From positions 3,080,147 to 3,144,146 of the forward strand of contig OZ199838.1 of assembly GCA_964304625.1 (NCBI GenBank): a stretch of 64,000 nt of DNA. Direction: 5' to 3'. This DNA comes from Kudoa neothunni. Its lineage: Eukaryota; Animalia; Cnidaria. How positions within the stretch are numbered: the first letter of the stretch is position 1; the number at the start of each line of letters is the position of its first letter. The notes under the pieces were generated by a model. The model did no database searches. It worked only from the letters and a program-made list of their open reading frames with translations, and was not told the DNA's origin. Positions 22,027-58,379 of this stretch are shown here, piece after piece. The translations under genes were made by a program, and so were the position numbers.

Positions 22027-22167
22027 GGGCGTAGATTTTTTATCCGGGCATGCGCACAGTGAATAAATGAACTTGTTTTCTTTGTCACCCTGGTTTACGA
22101 ATAGAGATCAAATAAATTAATAGTTTTCTATTGGATCTCTGTTGGGAAAATTCATTGATTGATTTGT

Positions 22168-25751: not shown

Positions 25752-27493
25752 TTGCTCAATATACATTTCACATTAAACAATTCATCAAAAACACAGCAAA
25801 ACATTATTTCATGGGTTACCTATAAATAAAGAAGAAAATTTAGCATTGTGTATTTTATTGACTCAAGCGCAGATATGATAATAAAGATTTAAACTTGAGA
25901 GCAAAAACAAACTATCATTTAGAATAGGGCTACTCGATTGAGAGTCCGAGATTCATATTCTGAGTTAACTGAAAAATTGTGCGGCCGGAAATGTTTCATA
26001 CGTAATGTATTAATTCTACGAAATAGGAATCTCTCCCTAAAGTATATTATGTGCGATTAGTGTGCAATCGAAGTTGATACAAGTTTGGTAAACCATAATC
26101 AATGATGAATTTTATTGAAAATTAATCTACGGTTTCCATGTACTATTTTCTGATAATGAGTATACACAACAAAAAAGATAATTTATATTTTTATTCAAAA
26201 ATAAATAATCTCATTAATATCTTAAAATGTCACACAACAATTCTAAGATATTGACCTTTAAACGTAGAGAATAACAAAAATTATAAAATGTTTTAACGTG
26301 TTGAATTCTTAAAAATATTTATCGATAACTTTTTAAGCAAACTCTAAGGTAAGCAATAATTAAACTTTAATAAGCATCAAACTTAAGTTCTTCAAGTTTT
26401 CTGTAAAATTATTTCGAATTTTTATTCTCCAAGTTACACCTAATTTGAATAAAAAAATTTAATAAACTAAAACTTTTTATCCTAGATTGGATCGTAGGTT
26501 TATTTTTTTCGTTGAACTTCTAAATTTGTAATTAAATCAAAAATCCCTATAAAATCAACATCTGCGCATGCGCAGATGTCACATTTGATATTTAATACTT
26601 AACTATTAAATATTTAATTAATGAATGAATAATGTTTTATAATGTCTTTTTCTAATGAATAACCTCGTTTCGAAAAATATTTACCCAGGCAAGATAAGAA
26701 AAAGTCGAAACTTTAATTTATTATCAGTTGTAATTGTTTTATTTACAATTGTTATCTCGTTAATATAGACCTCTTTTTCGTATCTTTTTAATATAAATAT
26801 TTTCTCATCCAAAAAGCTCTGTTTTACAGTTTATTTATTTGAGAAAGGATGCGGAAACTAAAATGAATTAGGAAGTGCTGCTCTAATACATGTGAGGACA
26901 ATTCTGCATCCCTCCAAAAAAAAAGATTTAAAAATGGATTTATTTTTAGGCTGGAGAAATATTTTTACTAAACTTACATTAAGAAGAAAACAGGCGCGCA
27001 CAAATAAATACAAATGATAATAGATTATACGTTTTCACTTTGTTTCTTGTCTTCTTGGACAATAAATAAGTTATAATAAGGTTGTTTATCGATTAAAGAT
27101 CAACTTAAATCATAATTTTCGGATGCACTAGATATACTAATATTTTATTGAAAAAATATTACATGCAAATAATGGCACTTGCGCCATATTATGGATTTTG
27201 TAGCTTTTTCGTTGATCCTAAATTTAAAAATTAAATAAGGAAAATAAACATGTGACCCCATCTAGAATGAAAAGTTTTAATTTATATAATTTTTGAGTGC
27301 AAAATGATTCTAATTTGAAGTATCAAAATTTAAAATAATTTATCAACAAGAATTATAAGCAATCCTTCAAAATGAAAATTAATTTAATTGTTATTTAACA
27401 AAATTATTAATAAAAAAAATGTGGACAATTAGGAGATAATTGGCGCATATAAAAATAATCGTCCAATCGAAAAAAACAAACTATATTAAAAAA

Positions 27494-28951
27494 CTAAATT
27501 TTAGGAATTAATCCTTTGCTTATCAAATTCACAACTGTAGCCATGTAAAACATAAGAAAATGATATTGATGAAAAGTGTTGGAATTGCACGAAAACTTTG
27601 ACAAAGTGCTTGGCGAGTAGGAAAAACTATTGACTATGTTCATCAACTGAGATAACGCGTTATAATTATCAGGAATATGCTTGCCAATGAATTCACTTAA
27701 AGATTCTTTATCAATAATGGACCACTATAACATTAATTGATTAAAAATTAAATGCAATCAATCACATTCAGTAAAATAATGTTATGAAGGTTGATGATAT
27801 CAGATTGTGATTGTAGGAGGTTGGTTGTGGATAGTTTTAGGCCATTTTGAGCAATTTTGGTTAACAATGAAGATTCACCCTCCTCACAACTTATTGTCTG
27901 GTCATTTAAGTAGGATTCGAAATACAATTTTGAGTTTTCCTTTAGACTCTATCATACAAATACAATTCATTATAAACAGCACACAAAGAAACAACCTCAA
28001 GGTAGGAACGATCTTTGGTCAAATCAAATAAGTATTTTCTGTACTGATAGAATGTTGAATACAAACTCATGCTGTGAAATCTCATTTGATTGTTATTATC
28101 ATTTTCGAAGACATTTGAAAAATATCTTTGAAGGCAAATGCTAACAATTGCATTGTTGCGAAGGAAAATTTTAGCAAGGTTCAATTTTCTATTGTTATTA
28201 GCATATTTAAGTTTGCTGTTGATTATGTAGAGATCTGCGTTTGGAGCTTCACAAAAGGATCTTGATAACTAACCGCAATCAACCGATATCACACTACAAC
28301 TAACAAATTCAATTACTTTATTGGATATATCACCAACATCCTCAAATATTTCTATATTACAACTCGCTGTGATATCAACACTATTGGTTGTTCTACAGTA
28401 GGTACAGAACAATACGTTTTTCAAGCCGATATCGATCACCATGACCTTGTTATATTTCTGCAAAAATATAACATTATATATTCATTGTTAGCATGTTAAA
28501 ACAAACCAACCAGCCAAAAATGGTCATCATTGGTGGATTTTTCAATACTACAACTAATGGTTTCATCCAACGTATCATCATCTTTTTGTAAATAGTCCAT
28601 AATTTGATTGGAAGTGAGTAGGCCATGTGTTTCGATATCATCAACCTTTTCGAATTTTTTTCCACCTTCTTTCTTCATTTTTTTCAGCTGCATCAATTTA
28701 TAATCAGGCACATCAAAAATTTGTTTAATTTTCTTCACATAAGCTTTATTAAATAGTTGAAGCAATTCCATCTAAGTTGATTTATTGATTGATTCATTCA
28801 TTCATCTAAGAAAACATTCCGATGGGTTGAATACTTGTTTTTTATGCGAAACTCCTTCAACATAGTTTCTATCTTTGATACTGGCATGACTGAGACATTT
28901 TGACTGTAAAAGTTTGTGTGCATAGGCGGGCACAGTTTTCCATTTATTCAT
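27494..28951 (-). CDS. TEFM/Ydc2-like (HhH)2 + RuvC-fold protein, paralogue B, predicted catalytically dead
   Basis: Six exons splice in frame: MNKWKTVP...|MELLQLFNKA...KFEKVDDIETHGLL...|KYNKVMVIDIGLKNVLFC...|...PNADLYIINS...|SLKENSKLYFE...|...HQYHFLMFYMA...PKI*. Confidence 0.7.
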
Positions 28952-29136
28952 CTCAAGTCCACCTGTTCCCACTTGAACTAATTTGTATATTTTATTCGAT
29001 AGATTGACTATACAAATACAAGAAATGACTTATTTTCTAATTATTTATGAAAGCAATCAAGCCTAAATCTTGAATTTAGCTAGGGGTGGGGGTGTTTAGG
29101 CATGCGCAAATTTAAATTAAATTTAAGGATATTTTA
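28952..29136. promoter_or_regulatory. Putative bidirectional promoter with GC/GT-box and NRF1-type motif
   Basis: 185 bp between divergent ATGs. GGGGTGGGGG at about 29083-29092 and GGCATGCGCA at 29099-29108. Confidence 0.65.
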
Positions 29137-30545
29137 ATGAGGGGTATAGCGAGGGTCCTTACCCGATCATCACTGTGGAAACGGAACCTTAATTATCTAG
29201 CGTATCCGAAACAAGTCTTGGTATTTGGATTCAAGCTGATACAGAATTTAGATGGTTGAATATTGTTTAGACCACCACATTAAAATATTTTAATGATCCC
29301 AAACACACATGGTTAACTGAGTATGGGATGGTGTTGAGTGATTTACGAAGGCTGCAGTTGATTTTATTAGAAGTTGATCGATTTAAAAATCTTCAGCAGA
29401 TAATGGATCGTAATATCTTGAATGAAATACAACTAAAAACGCTGCTGGATTATGTCCATAATGATTACATAAATGGTAGGACTAGTGATCTCACTAAACT
29501 TTCAGCTACCCCTGCTATTAAGGTTTTACATTAGTTGATTTTAATTTTATTTGAATTAATGTAGGATATATATTCATGTGTTGGAATCGATTTATCGCCA
29601 ACTGAAATCGCTTTTTGTTCAATTGATTCCTATTTCAATGTGACCAACCTGAAGTACATACCGTTGGATATAACCTTCTCAAATATGGATCATGTTACTA
29701 GAGTGGTACGTGGTTTATTTTTTGATTGCAATTTAGAATGTGTGGTGACAATTTAGATTTGTGATGTGGTGGACAACTCATTACCACAGGCAGATCTTTA
29801 CGTTATAGAACAACAACCAACCTCACTTAACCACGTCACGAAAGATACTGGTTTTCTGAATTTCTATATTATGGAGAAATTGCTGCATACAGCGATTGCT
29901 ACTCGAAAATCACAACAACAACTAAAAACACCTAAAATAATAACCATGTCCGAAAATGAAATGTGTCTACATAGTGGACTGCCCAATATGCAAACTCAAA
30001 GAGAATACATTTGCAAGGTGGTCACCGATGACACCTTCTACTATGCGGAAGTTATCAGATCGGTCAATTTAATGAAACTCAATGAGAGACGTCATGTGGA
30101 TTTGGAATCGATGTACGATGCGAGAAATATCTCCAGTCAGTATCTAGTGGATGTAAGTTGTTTTAATGGTTTTTGTTAATTTGTCGTTTAGAATGTTATA
30201 TCGGCCTCGTTTTTACCTGTATGATAATATTGTTATTTTCATTGTTGTTTTTTTGTTTTGAAATATTGTGGCAGGTTAATTAATCTCAACTTTGATTAGG
30301 TATATTTTGAGATCCTATTAAAAGATAATGCCACTCTAACAGAATTCCACTCGTTTGTTAACACTTTCAATATTCCCGACCACTTAAAATTATACTACAA
30401 TAGCCTGCCAATCAAGCACGATGTCGCTGATGCGTTGTGGTTGGCAGCTTCCTATTGGTTTTATATGAACAAGAATCATGCTTCATTTTTCCAAAATCTA
30501 CCTCCTCCCAGCTCGATCACCATGATTTCTAATACCACCGACTAA
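29137..30545 (+). CDS. TEFM/Ydc2(Cce1)-like (HhH)2 + RuvC-fold mitochondrial protein, paralogue A, with intact resolvase active-site residues
   Basis: Arg-rich, acid-free N-terminus MRGIARVLTRSSLWKRNL. HhH-like region LKYFND...RFKNLQQIMDRNIL. RuvC-fold motifs CVGIDLS, PQADLYVIEQQ and IKHDVADALWLAASYW. Six exons with GT-AG introns. Confidence 0.78.
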
Positions 30546-58299: not shown

Positions 58300-58379
58300 A
58301 AAACAGTACACGCATGCGCATAAAATAAACAATATTAAACTATCAACAAATATTGATTATTAGAATATTGTGATTAGAA

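Follow-up and report, generated by a model that had tools for sequence, protein, structure and literature searches.

Two divergently oriented genes, here termed A and B, were analyzed in a stretch of 64,000 nucleotides (nt) from the fish-parasitic myxozoan Kudoa neothunni (assembly GCA_964304625.1, contig OZ199838.1, positions 3,080,147 to 3,144,146), which is referred to as the window. Gene A is a candidate orthologue of TEFM, an elongation factor of the mitochondrial RNA polymerase POLRMT, and gene B is its putative paralogue on the opposite strand (Table 1). The pair is read, with moderate confidence, as a TEFM orthologue accompanied by a specialized, non-catalytic paralogue, both acting as POLRMT accessory subunits. 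The window is AT-rich (~30% GC) with introns of 40–150 nt, and the source assembly comprises 40.26 Mb in four contigs; the published assembly of K. neothunni is given as 40.2 Mb with 30.4% GC and a median intron of 49 base pairs (bp) (PMC12239612). Gene models were built by reading both strands and translating one exon at a time. Family and homology searches also were run exon by exon, and pooling of exons was confined to the shuffling of residues and to counts of base composition.

Genome searches showed that A and B are each present once. The introns of gene A (50, 42, 51, and 147 nt) and those of gene B in the retained model, model 1 (63, 53, 48, 56, and 41 nt), all have GT..AG borders and are in phase 0. 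A preliminary description of this DNA had placed the two genes head to head with 185 bp between them, a spacing which the coordinates of the two ATG codons confirm. The same description had reported matching phase-0 introns in the pair: four positions indeed are common to A and B, but B has one additional intron. In B, the LSRSF stretch is preceded by an intron of 48 nt; without splicing, the TAG of the intron acceptor would stop translation in frame.

Table 1. Features of the A/B locus and of the PF00940 loci in the genome (positions are those of the window unless preceded by G000)
Feature	Position	Strand	Remarks
Gene A, candidate TEFM orthologue	29137-30545	+	5 exons, 372 codons
Gene A exons	29137-29220, 29271-29522, 29565-29705, 29757-30152, 30300-30545	+	from translations and splice sites
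A exon 1, presequence-like N-terminus	29137-29220	+	28 amino acids, 6 Lys/Arg, 0 Asp/Glu
First Asp of A, in GID (beta-1 strand, RuvC-like fold)	29589-29591	+	ninth codon of exon 3, assigned by motif
A Glu of YVIE	29808-29810	+	aligned to Glu of human TEFM FYVLE
A DVAD, DxxD of last helix	30420-30431	+	codons 41-44 of exon 5, assigned by motif
Gene B, putative diverged TEFM paralogue	28951-27494	-	6 exons, 398 codons (model 1)
Gene B exons (model 1)	28951-28835, 28771-28511, 28457-28317, 28268-27996, 27939-27766, 27724-27494	-
B exon 1, presequence-like N-terminus	28835-28951	-	39 amino acids, 8 Lys/Arg, first acidic residue at position 27
B first Asp, kept (VMVID)	28431-28433	-	invariant in L005 orthologue
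B Asn replacing Glu (LYIIN)	28218-28220	-
B NIVN, MAFFT-aligned to DVAD of A	27629-27640	-	DxxD would have become NxxN
B HQYHFLMFYMA, last-helix segment proposed earlier	27539-27571	-
Disputed stretch of B	27706-27890	-	two 3' models, doubt flagged
Divergent intergenic region, putative shared promoter	28952-29136	.	185 bp, GC 0.30
GCATGCGC element, NRF1-site-like	29100-29107	+	30 nt upstream of ATG of A
PF00940 locus 1	G000:C2:9124637-9125881		L007
PF00940 locus 2	G000:C1:5208446-5209497		L008
PF00940 locus 3, two fragments	G000:C1:7051805-7052125 and 7060311-7060484		L009, L010
PF00940 locus 4	G000:C2:5061077-5062308		L011

Judged from exon register and gene structure, A and B are deep, highly diverged paralogues, as the preliminary description had recognized. 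Ungapped alignments of A and B anchored at exon starts yielded p=6e-3 for exon 2, p=2.5e-4 for exon 3 (offset 0), p=2e-4 for exon 4 (offset 1), and p<5e-5 for exon 5 (offset 4). Summed exon-wise local scores also stood above those of shuffled residues (z=3.45, p=0.003), and each exon of A scored highest against its positional counterpart in B. When a profile of exon 3 of B was compared with exon 3 of A using hhalign, positions 6–25 of one matched positions 6–25 of the other (E=0.0045). The length of this exon, 47 codons, is identical in A, B, and an orthologue of B from another species that is described below, and Asp is the ninth residue of the exon in both A and B. Chance resemblance is very unlikely because the similarity keeps register and is accompanied by shared introns, the 47-codon exon 3, and adjacency of the genes.

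The family identity of the pair derives principally from exon 4 of A (132 residues). In a phmmer search of the PDB, the top four matches to this exon were all human TEFM (E=0.02), with an alignment of 69 residues in which PQADLYVIE pairs with PKADFYVLE and FYIMEKLL with FHIMEAML (PxADxYVxE and FxIME, respectively). The nearest entry to the exon in the ESM Atlas was a chordate cluster bearing PF09159 (Ydc2-catalyt) with a score of 0.92 and 202 shared features. The ten best family-bearing Atlas matches all belonged to the same family or clan as the top one, and the next ranks were occupied by poxvirus A22-type clusters (PF04848), which are RuvC-like resolvases. Animals have TEFM, but to our knowledge do not carry Ydc2 or Cce1. 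Thus, gene A very probably encodes a TEFM orthologue because its PDB match is to TEFM, animals are not known to possess the alternative proteins, its size is TEFM-like, and its N-terminus resembles a presequence. The presequence-like composition of the first exons suggests that the products of both A and B are targeted to mitochondria. The tail of exon 1 of B (NY.EG...KKQ) is conserved in the orthologue.

The C-terminal RuvC-like domain of TEFM, which has an RNase H fold, was matched weakly by A, whereas B is tied to TEFM only via its paralogy with A. The domain would extend over exons 3–5 in A and exons 3–6 in B. The family assignment of B would depend on this paralogy as B alone matched nothing. 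Exon-wise scans of A and B against Pfam and PHROGs returned nothing relevant. Searches of the PDB with exons 2, 3, and 5 of A, with a 31-residue segment around DVAD, and with exons 2 and 4 of B were blank or irrelevant, and Atlas recognition of exon 4 of B was below threshold. Combined profiles of A and B did not strengthen the TEFM match. A hit of Sld3_N on exon 4 of A was sub-threshold (20.4 bits with a cut-off of 25 bits) and was taken as chance.

The metal-binding tetrad of four acidic residues is complete in A, in which the tool alignment backs only the Glu residue and the others were assigned by motif, and is incomplete in B. Codon positions and the last exon confirm the earlier observation that B keeps the first Asp residue, has Asn in place of Glu, and is devoid of DxxD. 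Neither of the candidate segments in B, NIVN or HQYHFLMFYMA, holds an acidic pair, and there is none in the last exon as a whole. As only the first Asp is kept, B is predicted to be a protein that cannot function as a two-metal or other metal-dependent nuclease. A is considered a possible enzyme solely on account of its retained carboxylates. Recombinant human TEFM displayed no junction-resolving activity (PMC3105396). The alignment shows that the human protein retains the same Glu residue as A, although it is inactive on junctions.

The catalytic Glu residue of RuvC, Ydc2, and MOC1 is followed by a wedge loop of the form E(X)2-4[Y/F](X)1-2[DKRNQS] (PMC7078210). This loop is absent from A, in which the corresponding stretch is E-QQPTSLN and includes no aromatic residue. 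The absence of an aromatic wedge after Glu, as in human TEFM, suggests that A is TEFM-like rather than resolvase-like. In exon 4 of B (residues 17–24; 28199-28220) the stretch N-SKLK-Y-A-N fits the spacing of the wedge loop, yet without the Glu residue. No exon of A or B matched PF09159 or PF04848 at E<=10. Genome-wide six-frame searches with these two models also were blank, but controls similarly gave no match so that the latter is a weak negative.

The coding status of the two genes was assessed from their open frames and from an orthologue of B. The probability of observing no stop codon by chance is ~6e-13 for A and ~3e-14 for B, and the off-frames carry 1–16 stops per exon. A profile search with the exon 2 pair retrieved one protein (P0002; E=7e-18) that is 61% identical to exon 2 of B, but only 23% identical to that of A. 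The protein is encoded on a metagenome contig in ENA (ERZ28624939, scaffold_50741, 601 bp; sample SAMEA5316497), denoted L005. On this contig, an intron of 57 nt separates the last part of exon 1 from an 83-codon exon 2, and a second intron, of 51 nt, separates exon 2 from exon 3, which has 47 codons and ends at a canonical GTGAGT donor. L005 thereby confirms the model of B, including the end of exon 3, as both introns and the donor behind exon 3 are those of the model. The GC content of L005, the only relative that emerged from the searches, is higher than that of the same exons in K. neothunni (0.42 vs. 0.32). The data set from which the contig derives holds another myxozoan-like genome.

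Across 144 aligned codons, B and the L005 orthologue are 60% identical, with proportions of synonymous (pS) and non-synonymous (pN) differences of 0.57 and 0.21, respectively, and a ratio of non-synonymous to synonymous substitution rates (dN/dS) of 0.24 that is rough as dS is near saturation. The synonymous/non-synonymous contrast was pronounced (Fisher p=1e-9), and differences were most frequent at third codon positions (0.44), followed by first (0.22) and second (0.17) positions (chi-square p=3e-7). These patterns point clearly to purifying selection on B. The preliminary description had held both genes to be under selection and had looked to a dN/dS ratio near 1 as a sign that B is not; both frames proved to be open and the ratio for B, measured against the orthologue in another species, fell well below that value. 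Because the orthologue occurs in a second species, the duplication is, on this comparison, older than the split of K. neothunni and the source species of L005. Orthologues of exons 4–6 of B were not found, word-indexed searches with exon 4 of A and exons 4 and 6 of B were blank, and a scan of JGI metagenomes with the exon 2 profile of B yielded no relative.

In searches of the genome, the phage-type RNA polymerase domain PF00940 scored over the Pfam cut-off at four separate loci. The four copies are 32–41% identical to each other in the motif A stretch, and the catalytic Asp residue is present in every one (DGSCNGLQH, DGSCNMFQH, DATCSSFQH, and DISATLVTH). The loci are old paralogues and the POLRMT family is expanded in this genome. 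Animals normally carry one POLRMT, and no description of POLRMT expansion was found in the literature searched. The co-occurrence of a duplicated TEFM and a fourfold polymerase is suggestive of paralogous modules of polymerase and cofactor. The third locus may be interrupted or may include a very large intron. An open reading frame between its two PF00940 fragments (L009:8518-9006, equivalent to L010:518-1006) resembles, by eye only, a transposase of the piggyBac type.

In the interpretation favored here, A would be the conservative copy that is human TEFM-like and has kept all four RuvC-type carboxylates, and B the fast-evolving, but selected, copy with only the first Asp residue. Both would be mitochondrial, non-nucleolytic clamp subunits of POLRMT. 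B might pair with A in a TEFM heterodimer, A:B, as its second and asymmetric protomer, or might instead assist one of the three additional POLRMT paralogues as a cofactor. The homodimer of human TEFM contacts a single POLRMT molecule asymmetrically in the elongation complex. In solution, TEFM forms dimers, and it interacts directly with POLRMT (PMC4357710). The interpretation is supported by the existence and expansion of the polymerase partner, as seen in the four PF00940 loci. Several observations weigh against it. The complete tetrad in A is compatible with a genuine nuclease. No orthologue of A emerged from an exhaustive phmmer search in which exon 4 was compared with 1.8 billion representative proteins and only a spurious repeat protein was returned. 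Exons of B alone gave blank or uninformative results with Pfam, PHROGs, the PDB, and the Atlas, and addition of B to the profile of A weakened the TEFM match from E=0.02 to E=0.77. TEFM possesses an N-terminal tandem helix-hairpin-helix (HhH) domain, and exon 2 of A and B has an HhH-like pattern by eye only: it has no Pfam HhH match, and PF12836 detected neither gene in the genome and only one other locus, within an open frame of 1,466 residues taken to be Spt6. AlphaFold models of exon 2 alone comprised four to five short helices with a predicted local distance difference test (pLDDT) score of 44 for B, and one long, artefact-like helix for A.

Four other explanations were weighed. That A and B are unrelated neighbors which resemble each other by chance is extremely unlikely: single-exon BLASTP comparisons gave E values only from 0.004 to about 1 and the exon 2 pair was not significant with hhalign, but the four anchored matches keep register at intron-defined positions (each p<=6e-3), exon 3 is equal in length, the shared introns are all in phase 0, and every exon is best matched to its counterpart. 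That B has no function of its own, being a duplicate that is neutral, decaying, or incorrectly modelled, is very doubtful. The failure of B to match any family alone and the ambiguous model of its 3' exons are in keeping with decay. Nevertheless, 398 open codons are not expected by chance, and the orthologue in another species keeps splice sites and exon sizes under the constraint noted above. Decay of B is thereby largely refuted for exons 1–3.

The residue pattern of the pair, a full D/E/DxxD set in A and one residue kept in B, underlies two further explanations, both put forward in the preliminary description. In one, active A and inactive B would form a heterodimer with an asymmetric nickase or resolvase function at junctions in mitochondrial DNA (mtDNA). 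The tight head-to-head pairing of the genes, the dimeric nature of RuvC-family enzymes and of TEFM, and the fit of B to the wedge-loop pattern, (X)4-Y-(X)-N, are consistent with this proposal. It is considered unlikely, however, as carboxylates alone are no proof of activity in view of the Glu residue in the junction-inactive human TEFM, A has no aromatic wedge loop, and no resolvase Pfam model matches either gene. Moreover, a single, separate circular contig of 18,219 bp has been reported for K. neothunni mtDNA (PMC12239612), and this plain circle of 18 kb does not bear out the link to multipartite or linear mtDNA that the preliminary description had raised. In the other explanation, labor would be divided such that A has preserved or re-acquired the activity of a resolvase whereas B functions as the elongation factor of POLRMT. 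The Asp strand of B (IDIGLKN..FC) appears closer to the canonical motifs of Ydc2 and poxvirus A22 than does that of A, so that B would not simply be a decayed A. However, A and not B resembles human TEFM in sequence, and this explanation likewise is improbable. Nothing that was found favors either the nickase or the division of labor. A bolder extension, that mitochondrial transcription in Kudoa was rebuilt as paralogous modules in which A and B are an obligate heterodimer serving as a single-cut nickase of junctions or R-loops with only the RuvC site of A at work, is judged distinctly improbable. If true, such a nickase in an animal mitochondrion would couple transcription to recombination-dependent replication of mtDNA.

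The 3' end of B can be modelled in two ways. Under model 1, the disputed stretch holds the last coding part of exon 5, a 41-nt intron, and six codons from the start of exon 6. In model 2, positions 27890-27706 are a single phase-1 intron of 185 nt and the product is 351 amino acids long, which would remove an insertion of ~50 residues relative to A and bring the length nearer to that of A. The 125 nt at 27766-27890 are open with a GC content of 0.35 that is higher at first than at second codon positions, as in exons. Model 1 was retained because the stretch is open and exon-like in composition, although model 2 may be the correct alternative.

The median intergenic distance in the K. neothunni genome is 3,578 bp (PMC12239612). 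As the gap between A and B is far below this value, the shared promoter proposed previously is reasonable, and a single bidirectional promoter probably is common to the two genes and co-regulates them. The GCATGCGC element in this region has five matches in the window compared to 0.29 expected, with copies at 22048-22055, 26564-26573, 29100-29107, and 58312-58319. The other copies are located 20–100 nt upstream of apparent start codons or within an 18-nt palindrome. The element probably is a general promoter-proximal sequence of the genome that is not particular to mitochondrial genes. The palindrome, ATCTGCGCATGCGCAGAT, is perfect, surrounds the GCATGCGC motif at 26560-26577 of the window in AT-rich surroundings, and is ~0.9 kb past the 3' end of gene B. 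In the middle of the intergenic region, the sequences ATTTGTATA / TATACAAAT at positions 28981-28989 and 29009-29017 form a perfect inverted repeat of 9 nt with 19 nt between the arms. The repeat is within AT-rich sequence and may be due to chance.

TEFM in animals is treated as a single-copy, homodimeric "pseudonuclease," whereas here it would be a conserved pair. No TEFM paralogue was described in the literature searched, and a pairing of the A/B type was not found described for any animal. Within the pair, the full RuvC-type acidic set of A contrasts with its near erasure in B on the other side of a single, very short putative promoter, and the genome also carries four POLRMT paralogues and very fast-evolving mtDNA. 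The locus thus offers a natural experiment on whether an ancestral-type TEFM can still cut DNA, on how a homodimeric clamp turns asymmetric after duplication, and on why a reduced parasite multiplies its mitochondrial transcription machinery.

Certain known systems share features with the locus. Plants possess several phage-type organellar RNA polymerases, RpoTm, RpoTp, and RpoTmp, and resemble K. neothunni in having multiple single-subunit polymerase paralogues in one genome. The plant enzymes serve two organelles, whereas the animal has only mitochondria; we know of no TEFM in plants. Mus81-Eme1 and XPF-ERCC1 are heterodimers of active and inactive paralogues among structure-specific nucleases, in which a subunit with an intact site is joined by a paralogue without catalytic residues, and are the model behind the nickase proposal. 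These nucleases belong to another fold family, and the pairing of A with B is hypothetical. The mitochondrial and chloroplast RuvC-type resolvases Cce1, Ydc2, and MOC1, together with poxvirus A22, act as dimers and belong to the RNase H-like fold family to which the Atlas clusters link A; residues matching their acidic tetrad are present in A. In contrast to these resolvases, A is without a PF09159 or PF04848 match and without the E(X)2-4[Y/F] loop. The closest comparison is with human TEFM (C17orf42; PDB 5OLA, 5OL8, 8U8U, and 9MNA). With 360 amino acids, the human protein is similar in length to the predicted product of A, and the two have in common a presequence-like N-terminus, a putatively helical N-terminal part followed by a RuvC-like domain, and no aromatic wedge after Glu. 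Human TEFM has lost the first Asp residue, whereas A has this residue and DxxD in addition to Glu. Moreover, the gene in K. neothunni is duplicated, with a second copy, B, that is without three of the four carboxylates.

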